Position numbers and translations under genes: made by a program | Shown here: piece after piece, positions 1 to 27,000 of the stretch | Position numbering within the stretch: the first letter of the stretch is position 1 | Layout: every line of letters begins with the position of its first letter | The notes under the pieces: generated by a model | Databases searched by the model: none | What the model was told of the DNA's origin: nothing | Seen by the model: the letters and a program-made list of their open reading frames with translations, nothing else | Assembly (NCBI GenBank): GCA_051294905.1 | Contig: CM119379.1 | Coordinates: 20,181,001 to 20,214,000, forward strand | Length of the DNA stretch: 33,000 nt | DNA from: Botryllus schlosseri | Lineage: Eukaryota | Direction of reading: 5' to 3'

Positions 1-3000
1 TTCTGTTGGAGAAAAGTATTATTTGCCATTTATGGAAAACGGAAATAGCATGCAGATCACCTAGTCCATAGCATTGTTTTTGATTCAAAACATCGCCACT
101 GTCTGCACTTGCAGCAATTCTGTCATATTCCGAGGAAATTTGCCTGCAGATTAAAATATCAGATTATGCTTCATACAAAAGAACACATAGTTACATAATA
201 TTAAAATCATAGTCAAATTGACAAATCGAACCTGATATTCATAGCGTCTTGTTCAGCATTTTGACTGGAATTGAGCTTTTCAGGGAACAAGGATCCTTGA
301 GGCAAGCACTTGGAATTATTCCACATGGATTCCAGGCATTCTGTCGGGTGTGGACCGTAGTACGCCTCACAACCACCAGGATACACTACAATAAACAGAT
401 GTATTTAACTGTTGTAAAAACATAAATGGATTTCTTGCCTATTCCAAAGCATTCCTCTTGCTCGGTGGCATTGCCATTATCAGCCATGTCGAACGTCGTC
501 TCATACAAGGCAATAATATCTCTGAAAATAGCAACATATGGAACGATGTACAAACTACATTCCTACTACTATACTGTAGCACTCACCTAAGGTTCATAGA
601 GTCTAAATTTGTGTGTTCAATCATAGTAAGATTGTAGGGATATTTGTAGCCTGCGCGTAAACACTTTGCACCAAGCCACATTGTCACGAGACATTCGGTG
701 GAGTGTGGACCATAATAGTTGGTGCAATTAGCAGGATACACTGTCATAAATAAAATACGTTAACTGAAATTTTTTTCAAAATGTCAATGTATCTTACCAA
801 GACCGTAACATTGCTTTTGACTGGAAATATCCCCATTGTCTGCGTCTGATGCAGTTCGATTATAAAGAGATGATATTTTTCTACAAATACAAAAAAGATT
901 CATATCTGCAATTTATGGCAATTATGGCAATACAAAATTACATATCAATATCAAACCATCATATATTTCACATCATGGCATCACAGTGCCATTAATTATT
1001 CATTTTATTGAAGTCAAGAATAATTACTGAATGCGGCCAAATTACGGCTTCGATATTTGAATATTAGCATTGATGGATTCCGAATTCAGTAAAAAAGTTC
1101 AAAAAAATTATTATCGGTATCTGTGAATATACAAAACTTCACTAATTGATATCTGACCTGACATTCATTGCATCAAGTTCAGCATTCTGACTTATATTCA
1201 ATTTCTCCGGGTACAGATCCCCTTCAGGTAGACAGTGGGATTCATTCCACATTGACTCGAGACAATTTGTGGATTTAGGACCATAGTATGAGTCGCAACC
1301 GTCCGGATAAACTGGAGACGCAAGACAAATTTAATATATGAACAGCAACAACCCAAAAGATAAATATAAGACGCACCAAGTCCTAAGCATTCCAACTGTT
1401 TGCTTGTATTTCCATTTTCAGCTAAACGGAACGTCTCATTGAACAGCGAAATTATGCCTCTGAAAACAGGCAAGTGGATGAAAAGATTGATTGGAAAAGG
1501 AGCACCTACCATATACCAACCTCAAGTTCACAGTGTCTAAATACAGCAGCTCACTAGTGGTCAAATTGAGAGGATATTTCGTTCCCTTCGACAAACATTT
1601 GGCAGCAAGCCAAATGGTTGAAAGACAGTCCGTTGAATGCGGACCGTAATACTTCGTGCAGTCAGCAGGATATTCTGTCACAAGCCAAATGTTATATAGC
1701 TATAAAAAAGTAACATGCAACATCTCACCGAGTCCGTAGCATTCTTTTTGTTTCGACACATCGCCACCGTCTGCTTCCCCTGCAATCTCATTGAATAACG
1801 ATGAAACTTGACTAAAAACACAAAAAATGGATTGGCTTAACAACTGAAATAACACCAAAACTGGACAGATTCAGAAAGGATTCTGATTTGAAGGCTTAGG
1901 CGTACCTTTACATGCATAATTTGGGAGCCTATGATTTGTTGTTGAAAATATTATCAATTTCAAGTGAGAGCACTTTTAAATGGATCAATTAGTTCACAGA
2001 AACAGCTCCACAAGGAACTTCGAGTGTTAAATTACAGTGAAGTGCATTCCAAATCGTATGATATCAGATGGATCAAATAGTCAATAGGGTGAATTGTACA
2101 CGACTGATGAAATCCTACTAAAATTCCGTTTTTATTTCTTATCCATTGCACAATGTTTAAATATTTAACTCTTTATCAGCCGGTTACTACCACAAAAATC
2201 AAATTTTTCAGCCAGTTTTGTAATGAAAAATGATTGTTAACCGCTAATCATATAAACTTCTGCGAGACAGTTCCATAAAACTGATGCTAACGGGCTGAAT
2301 CTGGCCCCCGAACAAACATAGGTCATAATAAGTGAAATCTCACGATATGTCCGTTATGTCCAATTCAGCACGCTGACTTGCACTCAACTTATCCGGATGC
2401 AAGTCTCCTCGAGGCAAGCATTTTGAGCTATTCCAAATGGTTTCAAGACAATCACTTGATATAGGGCCATAGAAGGATGCACACCCCGATGGGTAATCTA
2501 GAAAGAGATAATTTTTAGCGTGAAGTGTACCATATCACATCTATTCCATACTTATTCCAAAGCATTGCCCTTGCATTGTAGAATTGCCTCCGTCAGCCAA
2601 ACGGAATGTCTCATTATAAAACAACTCCACGTCCCTGTTCAGGGTAAGCATAGCACAGATTCAAAATAGCAAACCTTACTCACAATCGCAAATACCTCAA
2701 GTTCATCACATCCAAATCCAGACGGTCACTTGTAGTAAGGTTGTAAGGATAGTTATATCCTGTTTGGATACACCTTGCAGCAAGCCATAATGTGACCAGA
2801 CAATCGGTCGAATGCGGACCATGATATCGCGTGCAATTAGCAGGATAAACTATGCAAAAATTATAAATTCAGAATCATTAAATTCAATATAAGTAGAGGC
2901 TTACCAATTCCATAGCATTCTTTCTGGCTTGAGACGTCGCCACTGTCTGCCTCTGTTGATAGTTCTTCATAAATTGAAGTGACTTCTCTGAATATAACAT

Positions 3001-6000
3001 AACAGATAGTATAATTACTCTGTTAACCGAATGGCATCGGCTGCAATTTTCGAAAAATTTGACTTCAATTTTCAAAATCGAATAACTGTACCTTAATGGG
3101 ATTGGAGCACGGTAAACAAGGTAGCGTTCGATTCAGAATTTCAACGCGGATCCGATTGCGCCACTCAAATCATTTCGAGCTCTGTATCTGGCCACTTATA
3201 TCAAGAGCAAGCCGAGAAAACGTTGGTTGGGAACAGGCATGCTAAATTGCGTACTTTATGAACCTTAGTATAGGTATTCGACGACGATACAGTCTGGTGT
3301 ATTGTATAGGCTTAGAATTCATCGTTCTAGAGAGCCCTGAGTCGACGGTCTACGTCTAGCAGGCGCTAATTTCTAATCAAAACAATGCCGACCGTTTTAG
3401 TCAGCTCGCGGCAGACCGCTGAGAGAGTGAGTCATGGCTCGTGACGCGCGCGCGTATGGTAAGTTCTAAGGCTTATAACTCAAACTGTTGTGACCCTATA
3501 TTAGTTATTTTAGTGTTCGTAGACGGATATTTACAGTCCTTACCATAATGATTTACTGCAAATGCTTATCATTACTACAACGTAAGATATATATCGATGT
3601 ACGACAGCTCTTTGTATACCCAGACGCACGCTTTTGCGTAGGTATAATCGCTGAGTAATATTGTATGTATTCCGAATTATACTGTACCATTAGCCGTTAT
3701 TTAGAATCATATAGGCTACAACAATTCACAGACACAATCTATGAATGTTTATGGCTATCAGAACACGATATATTTCACGGTATGTGACGGGTATTCAGCC
3801 ATGTGCTTGAAGCTGGTACGGTAGTCTGGCGGAATTCGCTTCCCGGTTTTCAAATGAAACCTTGAGCGGTATAGAACTAACTAGTATAGTAGCTTTAGCA
3901 AAATATAAACAGAAACTGACAATCGCTATTCATAGCAACAAACTACAGCTGGTTATGACGAATAAAACCAACCAAACGACAGTGTATACGGCGGGTATGA
4001 GGAACGCGCGTGTCTGCGAAATGATGCGTCGGCGGATATTTTTGTCACGCGGCCTATCACATAGCTTTTGATCAGCTTAGGTGTAACTAATATCAGATAT
4101 GAAGATACGTGTGGACTTGTATGGACACTAGCTATTCACATAATGAAACAACTATGCCCGAAGACGGCTAGAACGAAACATACAGAACGTTATATGAGAG
4201 TGGTCAATGACGCGCAAATTGCCGACACAGTGTATTTTGCAACATATTTATCTACGGCGTTTGATATACGATTTTGACGTCTTCGATATAATAAATATCA
4301 AATTACAAGGTATCAATGAACTTGTACGATCAATATCTATTCACAGAAATGAACAGCAACGACCTAGCACGATTAATATGTAATATATCGTGGTTTCAAT
4401 TACGGTACTCTTCTCTCGTACCGGCATGTCGAAAAATAGACACGCCGGTGCGAAACGGTTAAATAAGGTGTGAAGTCTATCCAGATCTTAATTTTATCTA
4501 TATCGTCTGCTATCGGCTCAACGAAGTACAAATTGATATATTCCATTATTCTCAGGCCATCAGTGTGCATTTCTTCAGGGATTTGATGAATCCTTTATCT
4601 ATCTACTGATGATGAGGAAAATGATGTTATGCAACTGCTTGTATTCCAATTCATATTAAGCTATGGTGGCAGGTTAGCAGGCACATAACCGGAGGGATTA
4701 CTCAAATTACGGTGCCTCCTTTTGCAAATGTGAACAATAAAATAAGAGCTCACACTCTGCTATTAACGTATTAAATGGGCTCACGATAGTGAGAAACCTA
4801 CTATTTTTGGATATTGACATTTGATCGAGTGTTGTCATGCTAACCAGCGCCGTTGATTTCTCAAGGCGTCATGGAATCACCAAAGTTGTAACACTGTTTC
4901 ATTATGCAGCAGTTCATTTTATATATATAATGCCATGTAACATTTCATCAGATATGTTAGGATTCAGATCTAATGGTGTACGGCAAATCTTGTTCGAATA
5001 GATATAGAATGGTTTTAAACTGTATTGATATCGCGGCACCCTCAGAAAGGGAAAAATAGTTTGCCGCACCCTAGCACTACCAGCACCCTGAGTGTAACAT
5101 TTGGGAAGCTGATGACAACAACCTTATATGCTGATGGCGGTGTGAAGGTTATCACTTTCAACCTCATTGCCGGTAACAACCTTTTTTCTAGTCGTAGGCT
5201 TCCCCAATGCTACTCATAATTTGGATGTCTTTCATGCTTTATTATATGTTGCTGACAAATCTCTTCACTTCATTTTTCGTGGCACCCCTGATCAGACTAA
5301 ACGGCATCACAGAGTGCCACTGGCCCCCTGATGCAGCCTATACCGAAAGGAGGTTGTCGTACCTCGTGCATAATTTAGTACCCAAGCTGGTTCATTGCAA
5401 TTTCCAAGTATTGATATATCAGATTCGGTCAGTTACAGCTTCGGGTAGCAATCTCAGTGCCATGAACCAACACAAAGACATAATTTGACAGGACCATCTT
5501 CTATTCATAGAGGTATACAAATTAGCTTGATTGGTGTTTGTGTTCTATCAAAGTTCTAGATGTTGTGTAAGGCCAGCTTTGAATACTTGGAGATACATCC
5601 AAAAAGTACCAATCGACGACATTTAGTAACAAGGAACCAATAAATTTATCCTCCGGAAGAATACAACCACCGGTTGTAGTTTCAGTAGAAGATATTACTC
5701 AAGACAAGGATACAGTACCATAAGCACTCCCACCTGATGTCCTTGACTTCAAGATCAGCACGTTGACTGGGTGTTAGCTTGTCCGGATACAGAAATCCTT
5801 GGTGGACACATTTTGAATTGTTCCAAATCGACTCAAGACAATCTGTCGTATGCGGGCCGTGGTACGTCCGACAATTTTCAGGATACACTAAAAAGAGTGA
5901 ACGATTTGCAAAATGACGACCGCTAAAACAAAGTGACCAACCTACCAAGACCGAAGCATTCTTCCTGTTTGGCATTGTCGCCATCGTTAGCCAAGCGAAA

Positions 6001-9000
6001 GATCTTATTGTGCAATAAAATTATTTCTCTGCAAAAAAACAGTGTGTGAATATAATAGAAAATATAATACAAAAATGACATACCTTATGTTCATGGCTGC
6101 CTGATTTGCACGCTCAGTTACGGTGAGATTGTAGGGATACTTATATCCTTTCTTCAAGCACTCTGACCCAAGCCATATCGAGGACAGGCATTTTGTTGAG
6201 TGTGGACCATAATATTGCGTACAATTTCCCGGGTACACTGGCAATAATTTCAGTTTGAATATTTTGAGAAATACAAATTATCATTCAGTTTGCAAGTTAT
6301 AATGTGGATCAGCAAACTATGCTGAGTTTGATAGATAAACATTGAAGAAAAGCAGTGCATCAGCTATACCACTGCGTATGTGCAGTTACTCCGCATCTTA
6401 CCAAGTCCGTAACATTTTTTCTGGCTTGACTTAATCCCTTCGTCAGCTTCCTTGGCAGTTTTATTATACATGGTGGAAATCGTTCTGAAAGTGCACATGT
6501 GCTTTTATAGCAGATAAACCTATTCAGTACCATAAATTAACGACAATGTTCATAAAATCTGCATGTAAATGATAAATTACAGGTTGAAAACATATTACGG
6601 TAAATAATATTATTTATATTCTAAGATTTTGCAACCAACAATGTTGCAAAAAGCACCAAAGAATACTCTATTACCAGGAGGAATGATGAACACATATACA
6701 AAAAAAGTCACTTTCTTCAGTCAGTGACACCTAATGTCTTCATCCAAATTGATGGGAAAATGGAGGTAACATTTCAGGTTAGGATGAACTGGACTTTTCC
6801 AGCAGAAAAATGAGATTTTTTTTTTAATAAAGTTCTTTTCATATTTTAAAACCAGAGTCTAAGTGCATACCTATCATCTACAACAGATTACCAATTTCTG
6901 AAAATATGTTGCACCTTTATAGGGTGGATTAATTATATCCTTAAAAAAGCACAAACATGTTCATGGGTTCAGTTTTTCTCCCAACCCCTAATGGAAATCG
7001 GAACTGATACATAGAATATCCCATGTAAAATTCAAATTTATAGCCGGGTTTTCAATTTCTAATAGAACATGGAATGTAGTGAATAGAACAACAAAAAGAA
7101 TAATATTAAATATAATGTAACATATATATGATATTCATACTTGATGTTCATGGCATCAAGTTCGTCCTTCTGAGTTGAATTCAGATTTTTGACATGCAGA
7201 TCCCCTTGAGGCGAACACTTGGATTCGTTCAACATTGATTCAAGACAGCCGGTAGTGTGTGGACCGTAGAAGTGATCACAGCCATACGAAAATACTAGAA
7301 AGGCGAATGAAGACCAACTACGATGAAAGCAAATTCAGTAAGAACTCTCACTTATTCCAAAACATTCCCGTTGCTTGGTTACATTTCCCTTGTTAGCGAG
7401 ATTATATGTTTCATTAAATCGCGCCATAACATCCCTATGAGGAAGCGCATTAGAAAGGAAGAATCATACGTAGACAGTAAGAATAACAAACCTGAAGTTT
7501 AGAGTATCTAACACTGCATGTTCACTCGTAGTTATATCATAAGGATATTTTGATCCTTCCCGTGTGCAACTCACACTTAGCCACATTGATGAGAGGCACT
7601 CGGTTGAATGAGGGCCGTAGTATTCCGTGCAATTAGTAGGGAATTCTAAAAGAGAATAGTGAAATAAATAATTGAACAATTTAAGCCCAAAAGGAACAAT
7701 ATCACTACACAATACTAACCCATTCCAAAGCACTTCAATTGATCTCTCACTCTACCTTTACTAGCAGCAATTGCTGAGTTATTGAAGAGAGTTGCGAGCG
7801 GTCTATAAAAAAAGCGGTTGGCGATTTTCACAAGTGCAAGTTGACATAAATTCCAGTGTGAATAAGTCCATCAGCTAATCCTTGACAGTAGATCATAAAA
7901 TCCCAGGAAATATTTGAAAGCAGAGACATATCATACCTCAAGCCCATTCCTGTAAAGGAACTGACGTCACTGGACGATAGCTTGGAGGGGAATGCATATC
8001 CTTCTGAAAGACATCTGACATTCTCCCATACAACACTGAGACAAGCCACCGAGTATGGTCCGTAATACGTAGCGCAACCGCTAGGGTATTCTGAGAAAAA
8101 GCCCAAATTACACCCAAAATCATTTTGTTCACTTAGCTCTAATATTACCCATTCCGAAACAACGAAGTAGGCTTGTTACGTTGCCTGCGTCAGCAGACGA
8201 TTTCGTTCCATTGAAGTCGCGAATAATATCCCTTATAAGAAACTGCATTTAGATATCCAATGCGCACAACGACATGTATATTAGATTAGGGCTTTTCAAA
8301 CTTTTTTCTCTAAGACCCCATTGTGAAAGAAAAACGTATACGGGAATCGAAGATGGAAAATTTAACCTGTGTACTGTAACTGCCATTTGTTCGACAGAAG
8401 TCCTTTGAATGCAATATCAAGTGACAAGTTTGTGAACAACCAATGCATTCCGTGAAACGAATAACAACATAAAATTATAAAACGATAAAGACCGTCTAAT
8501 GTGACAGTGTATGAAACAGAATTTGTGAGGTCATATTTGCTTTTACAACGCCAATGGCATAGCAGATAACAACAGCAAAACTATCGTACGAAATGGAATA
8601 TCAACTTCAGCAATGAAATTACTCACACTTAATTCTACCCATGACAATAATTAATATTTATATAACGGTGTCTGTTACTGTGGGCATTTCATGTTAATTT
8701 TAGGGGTGCAATAATTTATGTGCCATACTTGTATTCGCTAGATGGCGTATGCTTGACGACACTTCCTGGTCTGGTCTAACGGAATATTCTGGATATAGCT
8801 GTGATAGGGTTCGGTTTGTCAATAATAATTGGCCCACCGGACGTTCCCCCACTGTATCTACCGATCTTGTTGGGAGAATATCTTATTCGTGCTACTACTG
8901 TGACGTATTATAATTTGGATATGAGGAAATTCGATAAATTGGAACTTCAAGTAATATACTGTTTCTACCATACTTAAAGATCGCGTATATTTACATCGGA

Positions 9001-12000
9001 AACCTTATAGGACTTTGCGGCGCTGTAAGTTGAAGGGAAGACAGCTTACACAGAATCACATGGGCAGTTCAGCGACAGCAACAGTGTCACGACTCACAGT
9101 TTGTGAAGCCCTGTATTTGATTACCTCAAGTTCATAGAGTCATAGCGCAAGAGCTCCCCGCTTCCTAATTTAGATGGATAAGCTTCTCCCTCGGGTAGAC
9201 AGTGACTATATTCCCATAAAGTCTGAAGACAATCCAAATCATGCGGACCATAGTACTTTGAGCAGCCAGTTGGATATTCTGTGCGAAGGCATTAGTAGGT
9301 TAATAAAGATACAATTGAGGTTCATAAACACCAGGCCAAAGTATTAAATTTGAGAGAAATACGGAGACGCAAAATTGCCACAATGGACATTGTACATGTA
9401 CAAGTACACGGATACCAGCAGTTTTTTGGTACTTGTTACTTATTATTCATGTGTGATATATACATGTAGGAATGATCATAGTAATATCCAGGCGGAGCCA
9501 TTAATCAGCAAATTACTTTTGTTTCAAACAATTATTGAGATTATGAAATCTAAGCGTAAGGCAGTAGAATTGGACCAATGACAACAAAGTTTATCAAATA
9601 GCAACCTATACCAAGCATTCTATATTCAGATGTGCAAATTGATTAAGATTACACCAACATTGTTTCCATACATGACTATGCAATAATCTTACCCATTCCG
9701 AAGCAATAAGTTTGATTGACAAGATTGCCGCTTTCAGCCGAATCAAAGGTGGCGATAAAGAAAAATGATAGTTCTCTGCAAAATTATGACAGATACTTAA
9801 TGTCATAATGATACACGATACCATTGATGGATTACCTTATGTTCATCGAATCAAGCTCGCTTAACCTTGTACTAGTCAATTTTGTTGGATACTTGTACCC
9901 ATGAGGTGAACAACGCGCTGTAGTCCACAGCGTGACCAAACATTCAACAGAGTGAGGGCCATGGTAAGTGGTACAATCGTCCGGATAAACTGAAATAAAT
10001 GAAAAGCAGTATTGTTGCTGTGCAGACTCAATGAAAAAGGAGTCATCGAAGGCTACCAAAACCAAAGCAGTCTCGTTGACTTTTCGCATCCCCCCCGTCG
10101 GACAAAATTCTGGTCAAATTTGTCTCAGTCATGTATTGCCTGGTTAGGAATGACCTCAATATAAATATCAACGACAAAATTGTTCTTAATACGATGATGT
10201 CACCTTAAATTAAGAGCGTCGATGCGAGTATGTTCAGCTGCAGACAATTTGGCAGGATACCGTGTCCCGCTGTCAAGACAACCAACGCCAAGCCAAATTG
10301 TGTTTAGGCACAAAGTTGAGTGAGGTCCTAAAAACTTTTTGCACTCATCCGGAGGAACTAAACGAAGAACGAAGAAAAAATAACAACATTGTCATACAAT
10401 CGCATCTCGAATGTTACCAATACAGACCCATTCCATAGCATTTCATCTCTTGTGCCTGGTTCTCGTTATTGGCGGAGATGGCCGTGTCATTAAAAGATGA
10501 TATCACATTTCTAGAAATCAAATAGATATTCGCAAGTTACGACTGAGATCAAGCATTAGGAATAGTTGAAGATGTCATGTAGCCTTCAGCGATGTAAAGC
10601 CTTGATTGATAAAAAGTGGAAGCCAGTTAGCATGTGGTGGATAATCGCGATGTTAAGGAGTATCTTCAATGAGTAAAAATGATCAATTTATTAAAATATT
10701 ATACCATCGCCATAGTATATCATCCACTGCTCCTCCAACCACAATTACAGTGGTTCTTAACCTGTAATAACCTGGTGAACTCTTATGCAAATCTGCAAGC
10801 CTTCGGGGAGCCCTAAATATTTGAGTCACAAATACAAAAATACACATCTACTACACATCTATTACATTACTATAGATTACTTGCGCAAAGAATCAACTGT
10901 GCATCAGAGTGTTAGAAGGAAAAAACATTAAAATACGATTTTCACACAAAACGAAAACAGTATAAGGAATATATTCTGCAAATCAGTGCATAGCAGCACA
11001 GACTGCGTGTTTATGGTGAAACGGTCTATAGTGTTTTGATAGTATCGATCGAGTTAATGGAGCAAAAGTGGTCCCTCATGGCTTGTTTGAAAGAAGAGAT
11101 CTCTGTCGCCGTGAATAGCACGTACTTATTCGTACTAGGTATGTGTTGTGGACTCCTTAAGGAAGTAACCAAAACTTGTATTTGTTTACAACAAGGTAAT
11201 CTCGTCTTATTGATTATATATACGCTCGGTTTCATTGCTCTCGTCTAGCTTCGTGGCCTAGTTTGTTAGGCGTTCAAATTCCTAATCAAACGGTACATCA
11301 CTTATTCGTTTCGCATTGGTCGTATTTTTCTGTTTTAAAAAGTGAAGTAAAATTTTCCAGAAAAAGCAGCCGGTGCCAAATCGGTTGAGAGACACTGAGC
11401 CAATAGAAACACACATACCACCTCTACTTTCAATACGTTTTTTAACATTTTAAAAGATCAGTAAGTATCAAAGTGAATGTTTGCACTTGAGAGCTACGGT
11501 TACCATATTTTGCGATTTAATGGTAAGCCGAAAAATGATGTCAGCATGTCTGGTATTGGCACGGACCACCAAACTATTTTCCGAATAATGCAAGCTTCGA
11601 TAATATTTCACACCTTAAACCGAGTCCAGTGTAAGAACCGATGACTGTAGATGAGAGTTTATCAGGCGAACCCGTTCCTTCTGGAAAGCATTTCACAGAA
11701 GACCATATCGAGGTTAGGCAGGCGACTGAGTATGGTCCGTAATATGTTTCGCAACCCGCAGGATACTCTGTCAAATTGAAGATATTAGAAATTTTGATGT
11801 TGAGGTTTTGGCGATCTTCGGATGAGTCTCACCCAGACCAAAGCAACGAAGCTGATCAGTTTGATTCCCAGAATCTGCAGACGATTTTGTCCCGTTGTAT
11901 TCGTTCATGATCTCTCTACAAAGTGAACACTTGTGGCATGTGAATTCGATACATGTCATCAACACCATACCTCAGGTTTTGCGAATTATGCCTTGAAAGC

Positions 12001-15000: not shown

Positions 15001-18000
15001 TTCTCATATCACTGAGAGCTCAAAGCTCTGTAGCGAAAAAGTTACCGTGATTTTATACTTGCTCGCTCACGCATTCAAACAGAGACTTCGGTTCTCTGGC
15101 GGAAGGGTTTGAAGGTGCAGCATATACCGACTGGGCCACTAATGCAATGCACGCTCAATGACGGGATATGCTTGCGCCGCTGGAAGATAATATTCTCACA
15201 AATAAACTGCAATCTTGTGAACTCTGTCTATTAATTCTTTAGAATCAATAAAAATATACATAACGCCCGAATATGACTGGTAAATAGGCTATAGTAGCCT
15301 AAATTTAATAATAGCCCACTAATAAATGGAAATAATGTTCTGCGGCCCGCAGCGTCTTTCGCTGTTAAAATGCGGCCCGTTATACGAGGGAAGTTGAGAA
15401 CCCCTGCAATAGACGAAATGAAGGAAGGAAGAACGTAGTTTATTTTTTGTCCTTGATGTTTTTGCGGCATATACACCGACTCATGATACGCATACACACG
15501 ATCTGCGCATATCCATACCATGAGTGCATGATGTGCATATGCCGCTGGACAAGGAAGTGCAGATATAGCCTTTACGGCTTTTTAAGTCATGCACCACCCC
15601 TCCATGCTATCCCAGTAATGCATGAGCGCGAAGTAGGGAAGCCATGGATACCAGTGTTACTAATCAGGTCTTTGGTCTGACCCGGCCGGGAATTGAACCT
15701 ACGACCTACCGATCAAGAAGCCGGACGCTTAACCATTACGATATCTTGTCGGTCGGTCGGTCAATAATATTTCACATTTATGCAACCCACCGATACTTAC
15801 TTAAGCCATAGCACTTGATCCTATCAGAGACACTGCCCGCATCAGCAGAATCTTTTATGTCCTTGAAACTCGAGGCCACACGTCTGAAAACAAAGATGTA
15901 GCAGAGAATACGGTGTAACATTCTAATTGTACTAAATTTGAACGTAGAAATCCTATCATATTTATGCTGCACTAATCCAGCAACGAAAGTTCAAGGTATG
16001 AAGGTAAATTATCATCATTCCTGTGGGTACTGAGTACAATTGTACATGCGTCACTCACTCTCCTTTTCACAGCTTTCTATCTCTGGCGATAAGCGTCAGA
16101 GTCTGCAACAGATATCTCAGCCATAGAGCAACAAACCTCAATCCCATTCCGGTAAAGGCCTCAAGTTCTGCAGCAGTTAACCTAGGAGGGTGTTCTGAGC
16201 CTTCGCTCACGCATTCTGCATCGTACCATAGTGTGTTGAGACATTCGACTGAGTAAGGCCCATAGTAAGTCGTGCATCCCACAGGATATTCTGCCCAATA
16301 ACATAATTCAATATACAATAAAGTGTTACATGGCATTGATCATACGCATCCCGAAGCAGCGCTCTTGATCAGGAATATTTCCTCGGTCAGCCGATGCTTT
16401 CAATGCATTAAATTCAGCTATCACGTTCCTTAAGTATATTGGTTAAGGTTATATATATATAATGCTAAACATTGGAATTGATTGCACCTGAGATTCATCC
16501 CGTCAAGCCTGTTGCGATCGGCTGTTGATCTCAAGCTGGGGTGGAAAGTCCCTTCAGGCGTACAAAGTGCTTCATAAAACATAGTCTCCAAACACCCCAC
16601 TGTATGCGGACCTCGGTAAGTAAGGCATTTTGACGGAAACACTGTAACAGAAGATGTGAAAAATTGATTTGCGTTCCATTGACATTGGAAGTTTACACAC
16701 TCATTCCATAACAATAAGTCTGACTCGCCAGATCACCGTCCTCGGCGTGAGCGTTTATTGACCGAAAATGGTCTTTTAGTTTTCTGAAAAACAGATTTCG
16801 TCAAGAAAACGTTGCATACCAACAAGCAGGTTCCAACCTGATATCCCAAGTGTCATACTCCCTTAAACGTTCTGTAGACAGTCTTGTGGGATGATGGTCG
16901 CCTTTCGTCAGACAAGATGCGGAGTACCAAATTGTCACCAAACAATCAATAGGGTGAGGGCCGTAATACTTTGTGCAGTACCCCGGCAGAGCTAAACCAA
17001 AGTGATAGCATGGACCAGCAAAGAAGCAAACAGATTGACCCGAACATCACAGGCTTTTACTCCAAACCGAGGTTTACTACAAGCAATATATCTTTAAATG
17101 AGATGACAGTATCATGCACATATAATTCACTGATTCAGCAGAATAAATAGATATGCAAATTGAATTTAATCTTCACAGGATTATCAAGTCCTCCATTATG
17201 AAGATTTAATTGTTCATATCAATCAAGAGTATTTATTATTCAGGCAGTTTGAGCCTAAAAAATTTATATCGGGAATGCATGATCCACGACTGCAAGCTGC
17301 AAAATGTAGGTAAATGTTGCCTACTAAAATCTCTTTCAGACAGCTGCAGAAAGTATGTGAAAATATTGGAACACACGCTTGACAATACTCATGAAATAAA
17401 TTTAGAGAATTTTATGGGATAACGCAAACCCATTCAAACATGACAATCACAACTGATCAATTATAAATGAAGAATTCAAATTTCCGTGTAAATTAAATGT
17501 GCATAGATTATATGTATATCATTCTCCTTCTCACTTATCAGTAGGGCGAAGAAGATTTTGACCTAGCAAATCAAAATTTTGACTTTTTTTACCCAAAAAA
17601 ACTTTAATTTTGACCAAATTTTGACCTCATGTATGTAAATTAGTTTTTTTCGCACAAAATGTTAAAATTGTACTACTTATCTTCATTTCTGATTGGAACT
17701 GTCTGTCATTACAAAGTAGTTTGGCCTGAAAAAACATTTTGGACTTCAAAACTGACAAATTTTTGCATGAAAAACTAGTATTTGTACGAAATCTGGCCCT
17801 ATGAAAAATTCCAGTAGTTACATCACATATCATGGTGGAAATAATTAAAATTTGTTGTAGTAGACCGAAATATACTACATTCTCGGGTAGAAAGTGTCTG
17901 TCTTTATTAAGTAGCTTGCCAAGAATGGAGAAAGAACGTTCAACAGCAGCAGTGGTTGGCTGACAACACTGAAGTTGTGCGTACACTGCTGGTGACACAC

Positions 18001-21000
18001 CGTGTTGCTTCATTCTGACAATGTTGTCGACATCACAATTTTTCATCACGCTCTTCTTGATATAAGAACCATGCAATGCCCAAGCGGTCTTGCATCAGTT
18101 AGGATATTGTGGTACGTTGACCATAACACCATGTCAATTTGTTTCATTTGACCGTTTATGATTCAAAATGGGCCGTCTACAACGGTAGGTCTATAAAGTA
18201 GGCTACAAGCTGTAAAATATCAAATGATAAGTTCACCGAAAGTGCAAAATCTACGATAAAAACAAAATGCGGAGGTCAAAGAAATTTTGACTTTGTAAAC
18301 AATTTTGACAAATTTTGACCTAGCGCTACAATTTTGACAAAATTTTGACTTATTTTGACATGTCAAAAAAAAATCGCCTTAGTTATCAGTAATTTGAATT
18401 AATTTTGTTTACTATTTAAGTGAACAAGTCTTATTACCAAGACCGAAGCAATCCATTTGCCTTCCAGCATTTCCACTGTCAGCATCTTCCTTAAAGGTTT
18501 TGAACTCCGCCAACACTTGTCTGCAAAATCATCAAGAACTATTAACCAAACCGATAGACGAGATACATATGGATTCAAGAAACGGCAACTGACTTCACGC
18601 TACGAGCCATGTAACGATTAAAATCCGTTGTGCTCAACTTGGATGGATGCAGTTGACCTTCATCCAAACACAAGGCATCAGACCAAATTGAATTCATGCA
18701 ATCCATGGAATGGGGTCCAAAACGAACTTTGCAACCTTTCGGAAGCACTACAACAGACTATGCTTGAAGAAAATATTTTAAAAACTCAATCAGTAAAACA
18801 TACCTTCTCCGTAACAACACAGTTGTCCCTTTGGTTCTCCGTCCAGAGCGTCATATAATAATGATGTGACGTATTCACTCGCTTGACTAAAAACGAAACC
18901 AAAATTGACAGAAAATTTAAGGTTGAGATACGGTAACGAACTAAAATAAATATAGTTCAACGAAATTTCCTCATTTCTAGTAACCAATGGTGTTTCAGTT
19001 TTTATGTTTTCCGACCCGGCAAGATAAGTGAATATCAGAAGCGACGAGTAACAGAGTATCAACTACGTAAACTCAATACGAAAGTACTCCTGGCTTTCCT
19101 TTTTCTATTTGTCATAAACACTGAGAGATATAGCAGAGCCAAATGAAAGAAATTTTGAAAATACATACCGGTATCATCGATTGCACAGGCTAAACTACAA
19201 TACTCACAACAAATTAGTCCACATGAGTTCACAATATTTTTCAGGATAATTTGCCTTTAGGTGATTAAGACCTTCAACCGCGCAAGCACCGTCCCTCCAC
19301 ACTGCCTCCAAACATCCTGCTGAGTGAACGCCATGGAATGTGTCGCAACTGCTTGGAAAGCCTTGCAAAAATAATCATAAAATTTACATATATTGGCCGT
19401 TAAAGAAACAACCGCGGCAGATTACCATAGCCCCAGCATGCTTGACGACCCCTACCACCAGCATATGCCGCATTAGCAAAATTGCGAAAAGTGTCGATAA
19501 TTTGCCTGTGTGAAAAATAGATTGTGAAATATCTGTGATGTTAAGATCTCAAGATCACGATTACAAAATTATCAGATTCCACGCTGTTTAACTGTATGGA
19601 AATTTTGAGTCGTGTGAGCGTTTTGGCATAAACACAACTCATCAGCCCTACTTCCAACACAGGCTCATACTCTGACGCATCGTAATGCAAGAATTGAAGA
19701 GGATACATATAAGGAATGTATGCTAAGAATGTAAATGAATCTAACTCTTTCATAAAGCTCAAATATTCAGTGAATCAGAACAACTCACTGGTGAGTAAGC
19801 CACTTCAAATATGTGCCGGAACTGGTATGATATATCTTTTGAGGAGCTGCTGCACCGACGAGTTCACACCCGCTATTAACCCACGCTATATGCAAGCAAT
19901 TCAATCGACGAGGTGTACTACCAGAGCATTCTGGTGGCAGAGCTGTTAAGAAATCAATTGGCTGGGATTATCAACTGAACAACACCTGGAAATGGCTGAA
20001 ATATTCATAATATGAAATGTAGTATGGTCAAAGCAGCCACAACACCAAGTCAATCGATACTATTTTGTTGCAGTTGTGACAAGTAATGGAAATAGGGTCA
20101 CTCGAAATATCATTGCAGACCCAATTCATATAATACTATCTAGTTGATATAATCGAACAAGCAGGCATTTCTGGCTTTGAAACTGAAACCTACAATCAAA
20201 GTCACAAAGGTAGTGCAAAAAGTGCCAATAAATGTGCTCGGTAAAGCACTCTGACACTGACCATCTATTCAGCAGGTGTTATACGGAATTCATATATCCA
20301 AAAACATACATAGGCATTCTGGAAATGGGGCGCTCCATCCAACATTCCCAAAACAATCGGTTACTTTACAAGTCGCAGTGTCTCTCCGGTATTTAAGTAT
20401 TGTATCGGAGGGGCAAGTAATAGTGCATACGGAGTTGAGGTTATTTGCTGATGTACACGTCAGACTAGCGCCCGGGAGCAGTGGAGCTAGGTGATCGTCT
20501 GAACATTTTAATCCTGCCCAAAAGAAACATCGATTCAAAATCAACCGAGTTTTAACTGACTTGGATACTTGCCTGGATCTACCACGCAAGTCGGAATCCC
20601 AGGGAACCACTCTCCCTTCCGACCCCCACTAATGTCGATACAATCAATTGTGCCAGCCCCATCAATAGACAGTTTATATCCAGTAGCACAGGAAAATTCA
20701 CACCGCGGCTTCCCAGTGTCGTTAGAGATTCCACAATGAAATGAGGTTTGAGGCGAGAGTGTCTCTACAGGAATCCTTGGACACTCAATATCAGCTAAGA
20801 ATGAGAACGGTGAAATAAAAATAGGATTACAGGTGGTCAAAATAGTCATTGTTGGTACTCAAGTAGTAAAAGCAGAAGAAATGTTCCAAGTTTCTACTCA
20901 AGTACGAGTAGAAGTGTCAATTTCCAAGTTAGTAAAATGTAAGTATTTTCTAGGGCTACTTTTGCCTAAAACTGGTTATGTAGCAGTAGAAAGTAGTACA

Positions 21001-24000
21001 AAATTATTACACTCAAGTAAGTAATACATGTAGGAAAAACCTAATTGGGAGCTCCGAAAAGCAGGACTTAGTTACAGACCACCTCTGGATAAGATGTAGA
21101 TATATATATAGAGAGAGAATTTGCACAAGTTGATAGAAACATAGCGATTCCGCAGAAATATATTCCCTTGCTCTGTCATGGATTGAATACTCACCAATTT
21201 CGCAAATGAAAGGTAGTTTACGATCGCATTTAAAATCATTCCACATCCCATCAGAATTAACAATGCCACCACAATCTTCAATGCCTAGCATGTCGTTTGG
21301 TTCCTGCTCTGCACTGCCACTCGATCGCCATCTCTCAAATGGTTTGTCGGCAACTATAAACGCATAACCAATAAGCATTCGATAAATTGTCTAAACATGA
21401 AATAAACGAATGATGTCAGTCAGGTCGAGAGATTATCACTGTGTTAAACTTCTTCGTCAACAGCTTCCAAATCAGGACACTCGGGATAATTTTTAAGCAT
21501 TACTCCTGGTCTGGGCTATATAGTGTATAACTTTCAAGAGTTTACCATTCCGACAAAAAAGGTTGACAAGCACTTGTCTAATGTACCGGTACATGGAATG
21601 ATGAAGGACACATTCCAGGAGACTCTGAACTAGAAACGTACTTTCGCAAATTAGCGGTAGTTTTAGGTCGCAGAGGCTGTCGGTCCACTTTCCCTCCTTA
21701 TTCAAAGTAACACACCGTTCTCCATTGTCATACCCGTTAGGCTCTGTGTCGGCTCGTTCCCAATTTTCATAATCTATTGTAAAATACAGCTTGAGGGCCC
21801 TCGACACAAAGTTTATAGAAAATGCTCATACTGGCATGACCCAATCTCTTTACAGATGACTCGCCATTGGCAGAATACCACGACGAATACATGTAAAGCC
21901 TCATTAAATCGCCTCGGACGAAATCCGCTTTACTGATCGCTTGAACATCCATGTAGAATTTGTCGTGATGATACGGTTTATTCAAGTAATAATTGTTTTT
22001 TTCATAATCGTCGATCATCTCCTATTTAGAGAGGTAGAATATGTATGATGGGATAAAATTCGAAAATTGATGCCGTAAACCATTAGATACCAGAAATTTT
22101 TATCAAATCACAACACATACCATTATGTTCAGAGGTCGAAAATAAAATAACCACTTTTGGTCATTTGAAGATCTGGGCAAATCAATAATTTGGCTTCAAG
22201 CAGGGTTGTAACCAAGTTAAAAGGCTACGAGTCTCAAGTCAATCTCACTTTTATAGTTTTGACTCGAGTCAATTCGTGTCATTTTCAATTCACTACAGAG
22301 TCCAAATCAGTGAGCAGCGGGTCGAGTCCAGTTCATGGTAATATGACTCGAGTCTGAGTCCAAGTCATCGTGTTCACTGCTCAGTTTCCAGTTAAAGTCT
22401 TGTTAAACCCACCTTTTATAACTCTGTTTGGAGGTATCCAATAGTTCGCATTTATAATATACTAATTGTCCTCCCCTTTTAGCAGTTTCTGGTCGCATTT
22501 TCAAGTACCAGTACCAATAGACGAAATCCCAATAGTGTGGTTACTTTACTATTCGGAATTACAATGAAATGTCGGTCTTGGCCGTCTGAGTCTCGATTCA
22601 TATGACTTGGTTCTAGTCATGCGCAACGACTCGAGTCCAAGTCGAGTCAGTACACAGATTGACTCAAGTCGAGTTAAGTCATTTTCTCAAATATCAAGTC
22701 AGGTGGAATCATCAGAAAATCGTGACTCGAGTCGAGTCATGACAACCCTGTCTTCAGGTTGAATCGAGTATCACTCACTGTGACGTCATAACAGTACGAT
22801 GATGTAGAAAGTGCAAATGTGTACCTTGTATATGATCATAAACAAAATAATGCTAGTTTTAGTTCTAGTTCGGTACTTTTTCAAAAACACCCATTTGATT
22901 GCACTTTGTGGCAATGTGTCTTCTACTAGGCAACTCGAATCATTGTGTCCAGCCCTAGTGACTGGTCATTAATATAGTAGGTTTCTCTGATTGTATGGTT
23001 ACTATTAGAAGCAATTTTATGAGTGAAATCCTCACAACCACAAATGTATTGATACACTGCATAACCATCACTACTTGTATTGTGTACCCTCAAGTCCTTT
23101 TAAAAGTTACTCAGGCCTATCCAGATATACTTCCAACATGTAATTTTCTTCTTCTACTTGAAGTCCTTATTTTGATCGAATAGATGTAATTTAATTTGCG
23201 AAGAATAGGATCCGGCCCTGAAAGAAGCACATACCTTAGTCTTGTTTGTTAATAGATCATTGATTTCCTTGGATTCAACACGCGGCAGTGTACCAGACAT
23301 CGCATTACAATGAGCCTTACATTCCAGGTATGTGCAGAATTCCGTGTAGGCCCATAGAAGATAGTTCTTCCGTTGATAAGTTATGTTGTAGGAGTACATT
23401 CTGAGTTTACCCCCAATTGTAAAATCTAGGTGAGGATAATTATAGACGTCTACCGAGCTGGAAGAAAATAAAATTCTCAATTTTCAACACTAACTGATGG
23501 AAAATGGTTTGTTAACTAATGTTGAATCCACGAATTCCCAACGACCCTCAGTTCCACTGTCATTCATTCCAATCCAAGTACCTGATACAAGACGTACAAA
23601 GAGGAGAGATATGCAATGTCATTGGTATGTAGCTTCTATACCTTGCGCAGAATTGAGATCAGACATAACTGTTGACATTTTGCTGACAAGCCATTCATGA
23701 ATCGCTGAGGATTTAGGCATTGCCAATGTCCCATAAATGACTGTAAGATGAAATATATGAAATATTTGGAGCTGGACTAAAAGTTACTATGGTGTTACCC
23801 CGTCATAGCCTCAAGCATACTCATATTCCCACGGTTGTAACCAAGTCACAAGGCTATGAGTCACAAGTCAATCTGACTTTTATGGTTTTGACTCGAGTCA
23901 AGTTAAGTCACTTTTAATTCACCACCGAGTCAAGTCGGAGTCCAAGTCAGCAATCAGAGGGTCGAGTCCAAGTCATGGTATTATGACTATGAGTCCGAGT

Positions 24001-27000
24001 CCAAGTCATTGTGTTCACTGCTCAGTTTCCAGTTAAAGTCTTGCTAAACCCACTTTTTATAACTGTTTAGTGATATCGAGTGGTTAGCATTTATAATATA
24101 CAAATTTTCCTCACTTTTAGCAGTTTCTGGTCGCATATTCAAGTAGTAGTAACAATAGTGTGGTTACTTTACTATTCTTCGAAATTACAATGAGATGTCG
24201 GTACTGGCCGTCTGAGTCTCGAGTCATATGAATTGGTTCGAGTCATGTGCAATGACTTGAGTCCAAGTCGAGTCAATACGCAGAATGACTCGAGTCGAGT
24301 CATTTCCGTATTTTGAGAAAATGACTCGATTCAAGACAAATCATCATAAAATCAGGACTAGAGTCGGACTTGAGTCGAGTCCTGACTCGAGTCATTACAA
24401 CCCTGCATATTACTAACTATCAGTAAAAATTTTTCACAGAATGAATTAAATCTCTGACCTTCACAATATTCTTCAGCCTGTCCCCATGTCAAAAGATCCT
24501 TGAAAATCAGATATGTTTTATCCAGATGTACGTCACGGAGGATGGCACTCCTTGTTGTATATGGAGCAGGAACTTTGGCTGTATTAATCAGCTGATTACA
24601 TTGTGGAATCCCAAAAGATATGGAAATCTTCACCCGTAATGCAATTAGGCATAGATCCACTCCATGCCGTACTCATTTTAGTGCCCGTGCAAGTAATATA
24701 ATGTGTGTCATCATCAACTTCGTATCCACCGTCACATGTTACATGACATCTGTGACGAAATCTACTTCCTTCACATCTTGCTGTCCTTATTTTTGAAGTC
24801 GGCAATCGAAATAAAGGACAAGATAGTACTAAATGGAAGAAGGGAACCTGTAAGGTTGTGATGCTCGAGGGAATGATATAACAACTTCAACCCACTAGCA
24901 CATTCATCTTTTACGAGTGACCACCGACCACCAAAGCTCGAATTACTCGGGCTGTATATACATAGCAACATTATATCCCTTCTGCCGAAATAACCAGAGG
25001 GACAATCAAATGCACAAAGGCTGCCAATTCCGTCATCAAAATCACTACCGCTGCAGGCATCCTTCACCCCATGCTTGAATGATTCCAGACTGGGACATTT
25101 CGCGGCTGTATGAAAGTAAGCGACTTCAACTATAGGCCTATAGTAAATTGCTGCTTTTCACAGCATTTTTGCATGACAAAACAGGCTTCGTAATATGTCC
25201 ATTGTCATATACAATGCACGAATACGAATCTACCATTCTACTATGCCGCAAACTTCATAGATGTACTATCCTATGCAACTTTAAATCAGGCTAACAACAT
25301 AGAATGGTTTCTGAAGATACCATAATTATCAGTAAATGGTGAACAAGGTAGCCAACTCACGGACGCATGTTCCAACAGTGTCGTCTTTATAGAAGTTAGC
25401 ATTGTCACGCCACACAAATTTCCCGCCATTTTCACTGCATGTTAGATTACGCGGTCCGTGAACAGTATAACCAGAGGAGCAGGAAACTGCGAGCACAGAT
25501 CCCACATAGTTCAAATTTGAATATATGTACTGTGTCTTTCCAGAACTTTTGTGGAAGTCACATGTACCTATGCCAGCTGCAATGAAATTTTAGTTCATGA
25601 TGATCATGATCATGAAAAATGGTACAGACAATTTCATAAGTTGCAGTCTTGACAGAAACTATAATGTAGGAACGTATTTCTTTTGGTAATTAGATGGCAT
25701 TGACAACCCAATACTATGATATAGTCATGGACTAAGCATCTACGAAAGTACTGGAGCCAGAGAGTGGTAGTCGCAGTAGTGATGTGGAATCTGGCAAGAG
25801 TTGGAAGTGGAGTCGCACAGAAAAATTTTTGATTCCCCACACCTCGTAACTTTGATGTTATTCAGTAAAATCATATAGTAATTCATGCAGAACTCAGGCA
25901 GTTACTGATGAGGCTGTAGAATATCAGTTGATATCAATTGATATTCTATAAAAAGCTTAATCAGCAGCTGCCTGGCTGATTTATGTCCATGTCTATATGA
26001 ATCATAGACCTACCATAGAAAGTTCAAATGTCATGCACAACATGAGCAATGTGCACATACACTTGCTAAGATTTCCATGAGAATAATTGAACGTTAATAT
26101 CTGCAACATATACTTACAAATTAAAATTAAAATTATCAATGTAAAAGATGCTCTTTTTAACACAAAAGGCAAAATGACACTTACATACACATGCAATGAT
26201 TGGGGGGGACCAGTCAGCAGCTCCGTCATATTGATATGAACACATGATCAATTCCGATGCAAGTCTCTTAAAACCACTGTTGCAGGTAACTTCGCAGTAC
26301 GAACCAATGTTATATTCATCGGTGCAAGAAAAGGTTGCATGGGGATCGATGAAATTAGGATCCGGGCAAGGAGAAGCTGAAAATTGAGTAGATCAAGCAA
26401 CACGAGATGGCATTTAACCCTTACGAAGTGGGTGTATCATATATATGATATGGCATGTCTCCGACACCAATCTCTCCATGTTGACACGCCATAGACATCA
26501 GGTACTACGTTTTTTGAAAAGCTGAGACTTTTCCGATACATTTGGTACCTTACGCAAAAATTTTGGTTTGTAAACATAAAAAAAATAAAAAAATTATATG
26601 AAAATATGGTTTTCACCTAAAATTTCCAGATATTTTCAGAGTGGGGAATATTGTTGGAATATCTGCCAGAACATCAGAAGTCGACATGTACCGCATTCTG
26701 TGTAAATGTTCACAGTTCACAACATCAAAACAATTTCTGAAGAGTTTTCGGAAGGAGATTTGTTCATTTTGGTCATGCTTCAGTGATTTTTAAGATCTAG
26801 GTCAAGTTCAAGTGCAAATTCAGACGGCATATGAGTCAAAAACAAGTTTACTATGCCTGCAAATGGTTGGATATGACGAAAGAAAGCATATCGCGTTGTT
26901 TTATGCCATAAACCGAACGGTTGGGGTCCGATGGAGTCTTGATCATAAACTTGACCTTGATGACCCCTCATTAACCACGCCCATTTCTAAATTCTATATG

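Follow-up and report, generated by a model that had tools for sequence, protein, structure and literature searches.

A C-type lectin domain predicted to lie within another in a sushi-containing gene of the ascidian Botryllus schlosseri

Exon structure and transcription of the lectin module

The window analyzed here is a stretch of 33,000 nucleotides (nt) from the ascidian Botryllus schlosseri (assembly GCA_051294905.1, contig CM119379.1, positions 20,181,001 to 20,214,000 of the forward strand), and positions are counted from its first letter. On its minus strand, seven exon-sized open frames (E1-E7) lie between 24578 and 21195 and carry the motifs in which an earlier, sequence-only reading had recognized the halves of two C-type lectin-like domains (CTLDs) in the unusual order N1-N2-C1-C2. 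That order was borne out by our own reading of the exons, by RNA joints and by segment-specific hidden Markov models (HMMs): N1 corresponds to E1-E3, N2 to E4-E5 (a diverged second copy of the N1 elements), C1 to E6 and C2 to E7. Anticipating the pairing argued for below, N1 and C2 are called the outer domain, and N2 and C1 the inner domain. Splice sites were set by the joints of RNA contigs and by comparison with paralogues. Every boundary from E1 to E7 has AG/GT, all introns are in phase 1 except that between E4 and E5 (phase 0), and the spliced frame is open over 325 codons.

The first three exons would supply the outer domain's N-terminal half. E1 (24459..24578, 120 nt; AG/GT, phase 1-1; RNA joints 24578/24634 and 23740/24459) covers beta1 together with alpha1 as far as the first conserved Cys (…TWGQAEEYCE), and E2 (23642..23740, 99 nt), placed by RNA joints and conserved in paralogues, covers the alpha2 region (GTLAMPKS). 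E3 (23495..23581, 87 nt) adds the WIGMND and WEFVD strands and stops where a long loop would start; it has a weak Lectin_C match (profile positions 42-64), and the RNA joint 23425/23495 at its end skips 69 nt. This intron (23426..23494, phase 1, with two in-frame stops) separates the outer N-half from the inserted domain; it is removed in contigs of both RNA studies described below, and paralogues have introns of 56-60 nt at the same place. E4 therefore begins at 23425 and not, as first read, at 23449, the residues taken from 23449-23426 being intronic.

The following three exons are assigned to the inner domain. E4 (23235..23425, 191 nt) encodes beta1, alpha1 (including its Cys) and alpha2, together with an N-terminal extension that bears a conserved N-x-T sequon, and E5 (21832..22021, 190 nt), which is supported by RNA and by paralogues, encodes a family-specific insert as well as the beta2 and W-Y-S-x-N-G strands. 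E6 (21642..21773, 132 nt; joints 21773/21832 and 21353/21642) holds the inner C-half (EPN…ERC…WTD…LICE), with a Lectin_C match of E 7e-7 (profile 68-106) and a Ca2+ site that is degenerate throughout the family. E7 (21195..21353, 159 nt; joints 21353/21642 and 20794/21195) is the segment of highest conservation and holds the outer C-half (PFERW…EPN…EDC…WND…FICE), matching Lectin_C with E 1e-5 (profile 71-106). When Pfam was run on single exons, E4 and E5, being too diverged for it, gave no match. Sushi/CCP exons flank the module: upstream at 24634..24828 (Sushi E 2.7e-5; RNA joints) and 24896-25105, and downstream at 20572..20794, a sushi/CCP-like exon on the same strand with a weak Sushi match (E 0.005, below the cut-off), followed by the next exon at 20310-20512.

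In many small public runs, words of E4 were almost fully present (0.88-1.0), whereas the whole 3.4-kb stretch was present at only about 0.3 (0.31-0.34), which is its exon fraction; these runs are therefore cDNA. We mapped RNA contigs of two independent studies, X8 and X10, onto window positions 20200-25200. Depth was zero in the intron bins, each intron was excised at GT..AG, and every junction E1>E2>E3>E4>E5>E6>E7 was seen in the contigs of the two studies, with listed joints skipping 55, 718, 60, 69, 58, 288 and 400 nt. One contig (X10 record 3) runs from the two upstream sushi exons through E1 to E4, another (X8 record 13) joins E2-E3-E4-E5-E6, and a third (X10 record 1) continues from E5-E6-E7 into the downstream pair of exons. 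Among the stronger joints of these two expressing runs, those listed ahead of 45 weaker ones, none links E3 to E7. Overlapping contigs thus chain all seven exons, a point that the sequence-only reading had put forward for checking, and E1-E7 are likely to be a stretch of one message for a large extracellular ascidian protein composed of sushi/CCP and lectin modules.

A family of modules with conserved order

Relatives of E4 and E5 were found at three other places on the same contig, and a fifth place was found by a search with E7. All five loci (the window, L008, L009, L010 and L012) contain the seven exon equivalents N1a, N1b, N1c, N2a, N2b, C1 and C2 flanked by sushi exons, and they form one cluster of about 180 kb (20.03-20.21 Mb of the contig) with modules on both strands. 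Spliced frames were modelled for the window, L008 (322 codons) and L009 (330 codons); all three are open, the latter two with canonical splice sites. No un-inserted relative, in which N1 would be followed directly by C2, was found in this genome. An extra C2-like match considered as such a relative was rejected, as it belongs to the fifth nested module.

Beyond this genome, a search of 1.84 billion proteins with the E4 profile gave 31 matches, mostly to ordinary multi-CTLD proteins; few covered the whole exon, and those were tunicate proteins. Family members include Styela clava XP_039270628 (module at 965-1323) and LOC120346535 (module at 5200-5516), Ciona intestinalis entries with whole-exon E4 matches, and P0005, a 908-aa open reading frame (ORF) on an intronless 2937-nt transcript contig, which has, besides the module at 518-832, a signal peptide, sushi repeats and one further sushi domain. 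Word-based homologue searches yielded only one further full-length member. The segment HMMs gave N1, N2, C1, C2 in every family member, as against N, C, N, C in ordinary multi-CTLD proteins. L010 is the orthologue of Styela XP_039270628 (C2 80% identical) and L012 that of Styela LOC120346535; since each is orthologous to a different Styela gene, the family was duplicated before these lineages split, and the cluster is old. The same layout occurs in Ciona, a member of the other main ascidian branch, so that the proposed search of other tunicates for this order was positive for Styela clava, Ciona intestinalis and the P0005 transcript. Two Ciona intestinalis proteins, P0019 and P0021 (one labelled isoform X3), stop right after the N2a-equivalent exon and could be truncated gene models or short isoforms ending inside the nested module.

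Comparison of the paralogues gave, for each of the four segments, a proportion of nonsynonymous differences (pN) of 0.09-0.40 and of synonymous differences (pS) of 0.6-1.0, synonymous sites being saturated. Because pN is well under pS in all four segments, each of them is under purifying selection, and N2 and C1 are constrained coding sequence rather than decaying duplicates. Mean identity over 21 pairs was 46% for N1 and 51% for C2, and 28% for N2 and 37% for C1, pointing to slow evolution of N1 and C2 and faster evolution of N2 and C1.

These data also bear on the idea that the main functional product omits E4-E6 and is an ordinary CTLD, the seven-exon form being minor or tissue-specific. 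Skipping would keep the frame, since the E3 donor, the E4 acceptor, the E6 donor and the E7 acceptor are all in phase 1, and assembled contigs can mask rarer isoforms. However, the joints listed for either expressing run include E3>E4 and E6>E7 but not E3>E7, and E4-E6 are under purifying selection. Moreover, E4-E6 are present in every family member, including the ORF on the intronless transcript and the RefSeq models of two other species, and no insert-free member was found in this genome. We therefore consider it unlikely that the module serves mainly as an ordinary CTLD.

Domain identity and pairing of the half-domains

The identity of E4 was approached with a profile of four paralogues. 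Its top matches in the PDB were CTLD N-halves in the correct register (E 0.04-0.14), the best including bitiscetin, CLEC-2, conglutinin and KLRF2. Profile-profile alignment with hhalign matched N1 to N2 over alpha1-alpha2 (E 1e-3) and C1 to C2 (E 2e-11). From its PDB matches and the N1/N2 alignment, E4 is identified as a CTLD N-half. On the full-length homologue P0005, Pfam returned four partial Lectin_C (PF00059) stretches in the order N, N, C, C, the split pattern that had been predicted for a lectin profile. The outer domain accounts for two of them, N1 covering profile positions 2-68 (E 7e-8) and C2 positions 69-106 (E 0.005, under the Pfam cut-off, as against 1e-5 for E7 of the window), so that N1 and C2 together span the profile as a split match. 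The inner domain (P0005 604-778) matches in two stretches with E 1.6e-8. The four Cys that would form the canonical disulfides of the outer domain (Cys 1 in alpha1 to Cys 4 in beta5, and Cys 2 to Cys 3) are kept in 7/7 aligned modules.

In CTLDs, the N- and C-termini are adjacent, and the long loop lies between beta2 and beta3 (PMC6468738). When canonical CTLDs were aligned to the module by MAFFT, 20/20 fell on N1 and C2 and left N2 and C1 as a single gap. Full canonical rows were nevertheless excluded from the alignment used for folding, because such rows tie N1 to C2 and would bias the fold. Alignments mixing exon pieces with canonical half-domains were misplaced by MAFFT (E6 pieces on C2, E4 on N1, C-halves split) and were not used, and an AlphaFold2 model built from the four full-length family rows alone was unusable, with a predicted local distance difference test score (pLDDT) of 40. 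In the alignment finally folded (A4), the added rows are 45 N-halves of canonical CTLDs and, taken from this genome, ten exon pieces of N1, and every one of them lies on N1 only; here, just the 4-6 family rows link N1 to any C-half. The resulting second AlphaFold2 model, which comprises 329 residues and was made for the homologue P0005, has a mean pLDDT of 70.3 and a predicted template modelling score (pTM) of 0.51 and contains two CTLDs. By segment, pLDDT is 75-96 in N1, 58-86 in N2 (where the part from E5 forms helices and strands), 51-84 in C1 and 60-85 in the C2 strands, and below 50 in two linkers and the outer long loop.

Comparison of this model with 710 solved PDB chains by VIA-align separated two sets of matches. 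CL-K1 aligned over model residues 11..328 (Z 16.6, 121 residues, root-mean-square deviation (rmsd) 2.2 Å), and SRCL, dectin-1, MBP-C, DC-SIGN and many others aligned 105-125 residues across 11..325-329; these spans correspond to N1+C2. In contrast, CLEC9A (Z 14.9, 119 residues) aligned over 104..273, and LOX-1 and NKR-P1 (127-131 residues) over 89/90..274, that is, to N2+C1. The outer pair thus has the CTLD fold in the predicted model, and the inner pair is recognized as a CTLD by profile and, in the model, by fold. As the spans of 11..328 (with about 115 residues aligned) and 90..274 indicate, the module is predicted to fold as a domain within a domain, N1+C2 around N2+C1, rather than as a swapped pair; the evidence for this is good but not conclusive. 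Topology also favours nesting, since N2+C1 is a contiguous whole CTLD, CTLD termini are adjacent and the link between C1 and C2 is only about 5 residues long. The sequence-only reading had left nested and swapped folds side by side, and the prediction supports the former and not the latter.

In the swapped arrangement, N1 would pair with C1 and N2 with C2 to give two intertwined CTLDs within one chain. The break does coincide with the beginning of the long loop, which is exchanged between subunits in related snake-venom C-type lectin-like proteins (PMC6468738), and C1 is homologous to C2, so that either could in principle complete N1. However, no PDB match to the model has a span of the swapped type (about 11..270 or about 100..329), and to judge from the spans found, the long loop of the predicted model is not packed on a partner core in the manner of the snake-venom proteins (snaclecs). 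N2+C1 forms a full CTLD on its own, and the evolutionary rates pair N1 with C2 and N2 with C1. In addition, the roughly 5 residues from the end of C1 to the PFERW of C2 suit a return from an insert but would have to bridge from bottom to top in a swapped pair. Such a pair therefore appears quite improbable.

The sequence-only reading had named three outcomes against itself. Two of them, a local misassembly and an overlooked C-half exon, can be grouped with decay of duplicated exons as ways in which a tandem N-C-N-C arrangement might be disguised, and the error-prone setting of two repeat copies of about 550 bp in the E1/E2 and E4/E5 introns might be cited for this idea. It can practically be dismissed, because the repeats are direct and permit one order only, the 69 nt between E3 and E4 are removed precisely in the RNA of two studies, the order is common to five loci here and three other species, and all frames are open and constrained. 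The third, that transcripts would never contain both N-halves and both C-halves, is likewise excluded by RNA, paralogues and other species.

The proposed explanation of the module is therefore nesting. E4-E6 would encode a complete, contiguous inner CTLD set where the outer long loop begins, splitting the outer domain into N1 (E1-E3) and C2 (E7). We infer that one CTLD received a second, as a whole cassette with phase-1 intron borders, before the divergence of the main ascidian lineages. The E4-E6 cassette has phase-1 introns at both ends, its skipping preserves the frame, and these features would fit exon shuffling of one whole CTLD into another. Ordinary three-exon CTLDs flank the nested module at L010 (positions 2050-3000 and 6400-7400 of that locus, minus strand).

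Several points weigh against this reading. In the ordinary CTLDs beside the L010 module, the last intron precedes the W-x-W strand and is placed about 17 residues upstream of where E3 and E4 meet; because it lies elsewhere, insertion into a pre-existing intron is no more than a possibility. No single read or contig covers all seven exons, the chain being built from overlapping assembled contigs, and a minor isoform skipping E4-E6 in frame may be compatible with these contigs; in the raw bulk RNA-seq data of one run, X13, the exons drew no reads. The predicted fold is that of P0005, which is about 37% identical, and not that of the window's own product. The pTM is low, and the outer long loop with pLDDT below 50 includes the EPN stretch. 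Pairing was deduced from where the structural alignments start and end and from how many residues they cover, not from coordinates or the predicted aligned error, and the deep N1 rows may have favoured the more canonical partner, C2, in AlphaFold. While exon order, splicing, conservation and selective constraint are direct observations, the explanation as a whole, with a single mRNA, a nested fold, the ligands given below and the proposed origin, is in our judgement probably correct.

Binding sites, comparison with known lectins and neighbouring features

The EPN and WND motifs form Ca2+ site 2 and, with the Glu that precedes the Cys, are the sugar ligands of mannose-type lectins (PMC6468738). 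In the alignment, outer C2 of the window has the full site-2 set in E7 (EPN, EDC, WND), and the EPN/E/WND set is kept in 6/7 aligned family modules, Ciona having QPD/WKD. The outer domain is accordingly predicted, from these residues, to be a Ca2+-dependent lectin of the mannose/GlcNAc/fucose type. Inner C1 has EPN…E…WTD in the window and not WND; elsewhere it has QPN/K/WED or WVD in paralogues and DPxG…H…WID in orthologues, so that site 2 is conserved in the outer domain but not in the inner one. Thus, of the sugar sites that had been read into both C-halves, that of C2 stands and that of C1 does not. The inner domain probably offers a second, non-sugar surface adjoining the sugar site, and in the model it resembles CTLDs of the natural killer (NK)-receptor/LOX-1 type. 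Because the insertion falls at the long loop's base, the inner domain is expected to lie beside the outer sugar site, and a combined or modulated binding surface is plausible. More tentatively, the nested pair might be a two-in-one recognition unit in which the fast-evolving inner CTLD, placed at the rim of the outer sugar site, serves it as an integral co-receptor or as a lid, so that binding would need a glycan together with a neighbouring protein surface, an ascidian invention expanded in a gene cluster for recognition of self and non-self or of microbes; we regard this as possible but doubtful.

Several other features of the module were noted. All members retain an N-x-T sequon where the inner domain starts. 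An extra Cys pair (F-C-x5-C-x3-C) is found in inner alpha1 (E4) in the window, L008, L009 and P0005; the Styela, Ciona and L010 forms lack it as a pair and carry instead an additional Cys in the outer long loop (AWCDEHC). In the C1 exon of L009 (6814-6951 of that locus), both Cys of the inner C2-C3 disulfide (numbered by Cys) have been lost together while the C-terminal Cys is kept, and such joint loss is characteristic of genuine, folded proteins.

Few extracellular modules have been surveyed as thoroughly as the C-type lectin fold, whose known multi-domain forms string their domains one after another like beads. Canonical carbohydrate-recognition domains (CL-K1 4yli, MBP-C 1kza, DC-SIGN 1k9i, SRCL 2ox9) superpose on N1+C2 of the model over 110-121 residues (Z 15-16.6, rmsd 2.0-2.3 Å), and the outer domain shares with them WIGMND, the alpha1 and C-terminal Cys, and EPN…E…WND. 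Unlike in these domains, the chain would exit after the W-x-F-x-D strand, build a CTLD of about 170 residues and return for the long loop and beta3-beta5. Group V, or NK-receptor-like, CTLDs (LOX-1 1ypq/7xmp, CLEC9A 3vpp, NKR-P1 5mgs) superpose on N2+C1 (Z 14.6-14.9, 119-131 residues, model 90..274), and the inner domain likewise has no conserved Ca2+/sugar site. However, Group V CTLDs are free-standing receptor heads, whereas the inner domain is an insert with an extra segment from E5 and the sequon. Tandem multi-CTLD proteins, such as the mannose-receptor family and the dual-CTLD immulectins of insects, also have several CTLDs per chain, often alongside sushi or other modules, and phase-1 exon shuffling, but they are strictly N-C-N-C. 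Snaclecs share the point at which the chain leaves the core, a hinge between beta2 and beta3 where the long loop begins (PMC6468738). They swap the loop between two chains, whereas in the present module the insert is a complete domain within a single chain, and the outer loop is predicted to return to the core it belongs to.

We found no counterpart of the whole module. None of the 710 solved PDB chains aligned over more than 131 of the 329 model residues. Cluster representatives of the AlphaFold DB gave tandem-CTLD matches only (TM 0.24-0.36, rmsd 9-29 Å), with no whole-module match. Searches of the ESM Atlas gave a best TM of 0.45 by shape, with no whole-module match, and generic lectin clusters only by features. 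The literature searched, including a CTLD genome survey and a CTLD structure review, described no nested or split CTLD, although it took in few subscription papers and absence is not proof. The architecture thus appears to be undescribed, as had been suspected, and sets a known fold, whose chemistry is probably known as well, in a domain-in-domain arrangement seen so far in ascidians only. It suggests that the CTLD fold tolerates insertion of a whole domain at the place that shapes its sugar site, and it offers a natural case of nested insertion of the same fold, which is uncommon. Domain annotators give only fragments of such modules, as split Lectin_C matches in giant ascidian proteins. The arrangement also points to a design that would fix a sugar site and a second binding surface rigidly to each other, although its practical value is modest for now.

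The introns of the lectin-module gene are of two kinds. Very short ones of 55-69 nt (20513-20571, 21774-21831, 23426-23494, 23582-23641 and 24579-24633) stand beside longer ones of several hundred to 1200 nt that carry a repeat element. Two copies of this element, about 550 bp long and similar to a miniature inverted-repeat transposable element, lie in the same orientation at 22201-22745 and 23830-24400, in the E4/E5 and E1/E2 introns; they are 77-95% identical in blocks and have short terminal inverted repeats (CAGGGTTGTAA…TTACAACCCTG). RNA contig depth over the element is in the thousands, indicating that it is abundant and transcribed genome-wide.

Elsewhere in the window, between about 200 and 18750 on the minus strand, at least 15 exons carry a repeated Cys unit (YP-x-x-C-x-x-YYGPHS-x-x-CL…W…C), for example at 18578-18748, 16070-16336, 11577-11774, 9835-10089 and 1439-1681, and they alternate with exons of a second type (GN-x-[ST]…C-x-GLG). 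The Cys unit matched no Pfam family. Styela clava LOC120345301 and LOC120346535 contain it at least 40 times, and it is also present in a Ciona protein; it looks like an undescribed extracellular repeat of ascidians.

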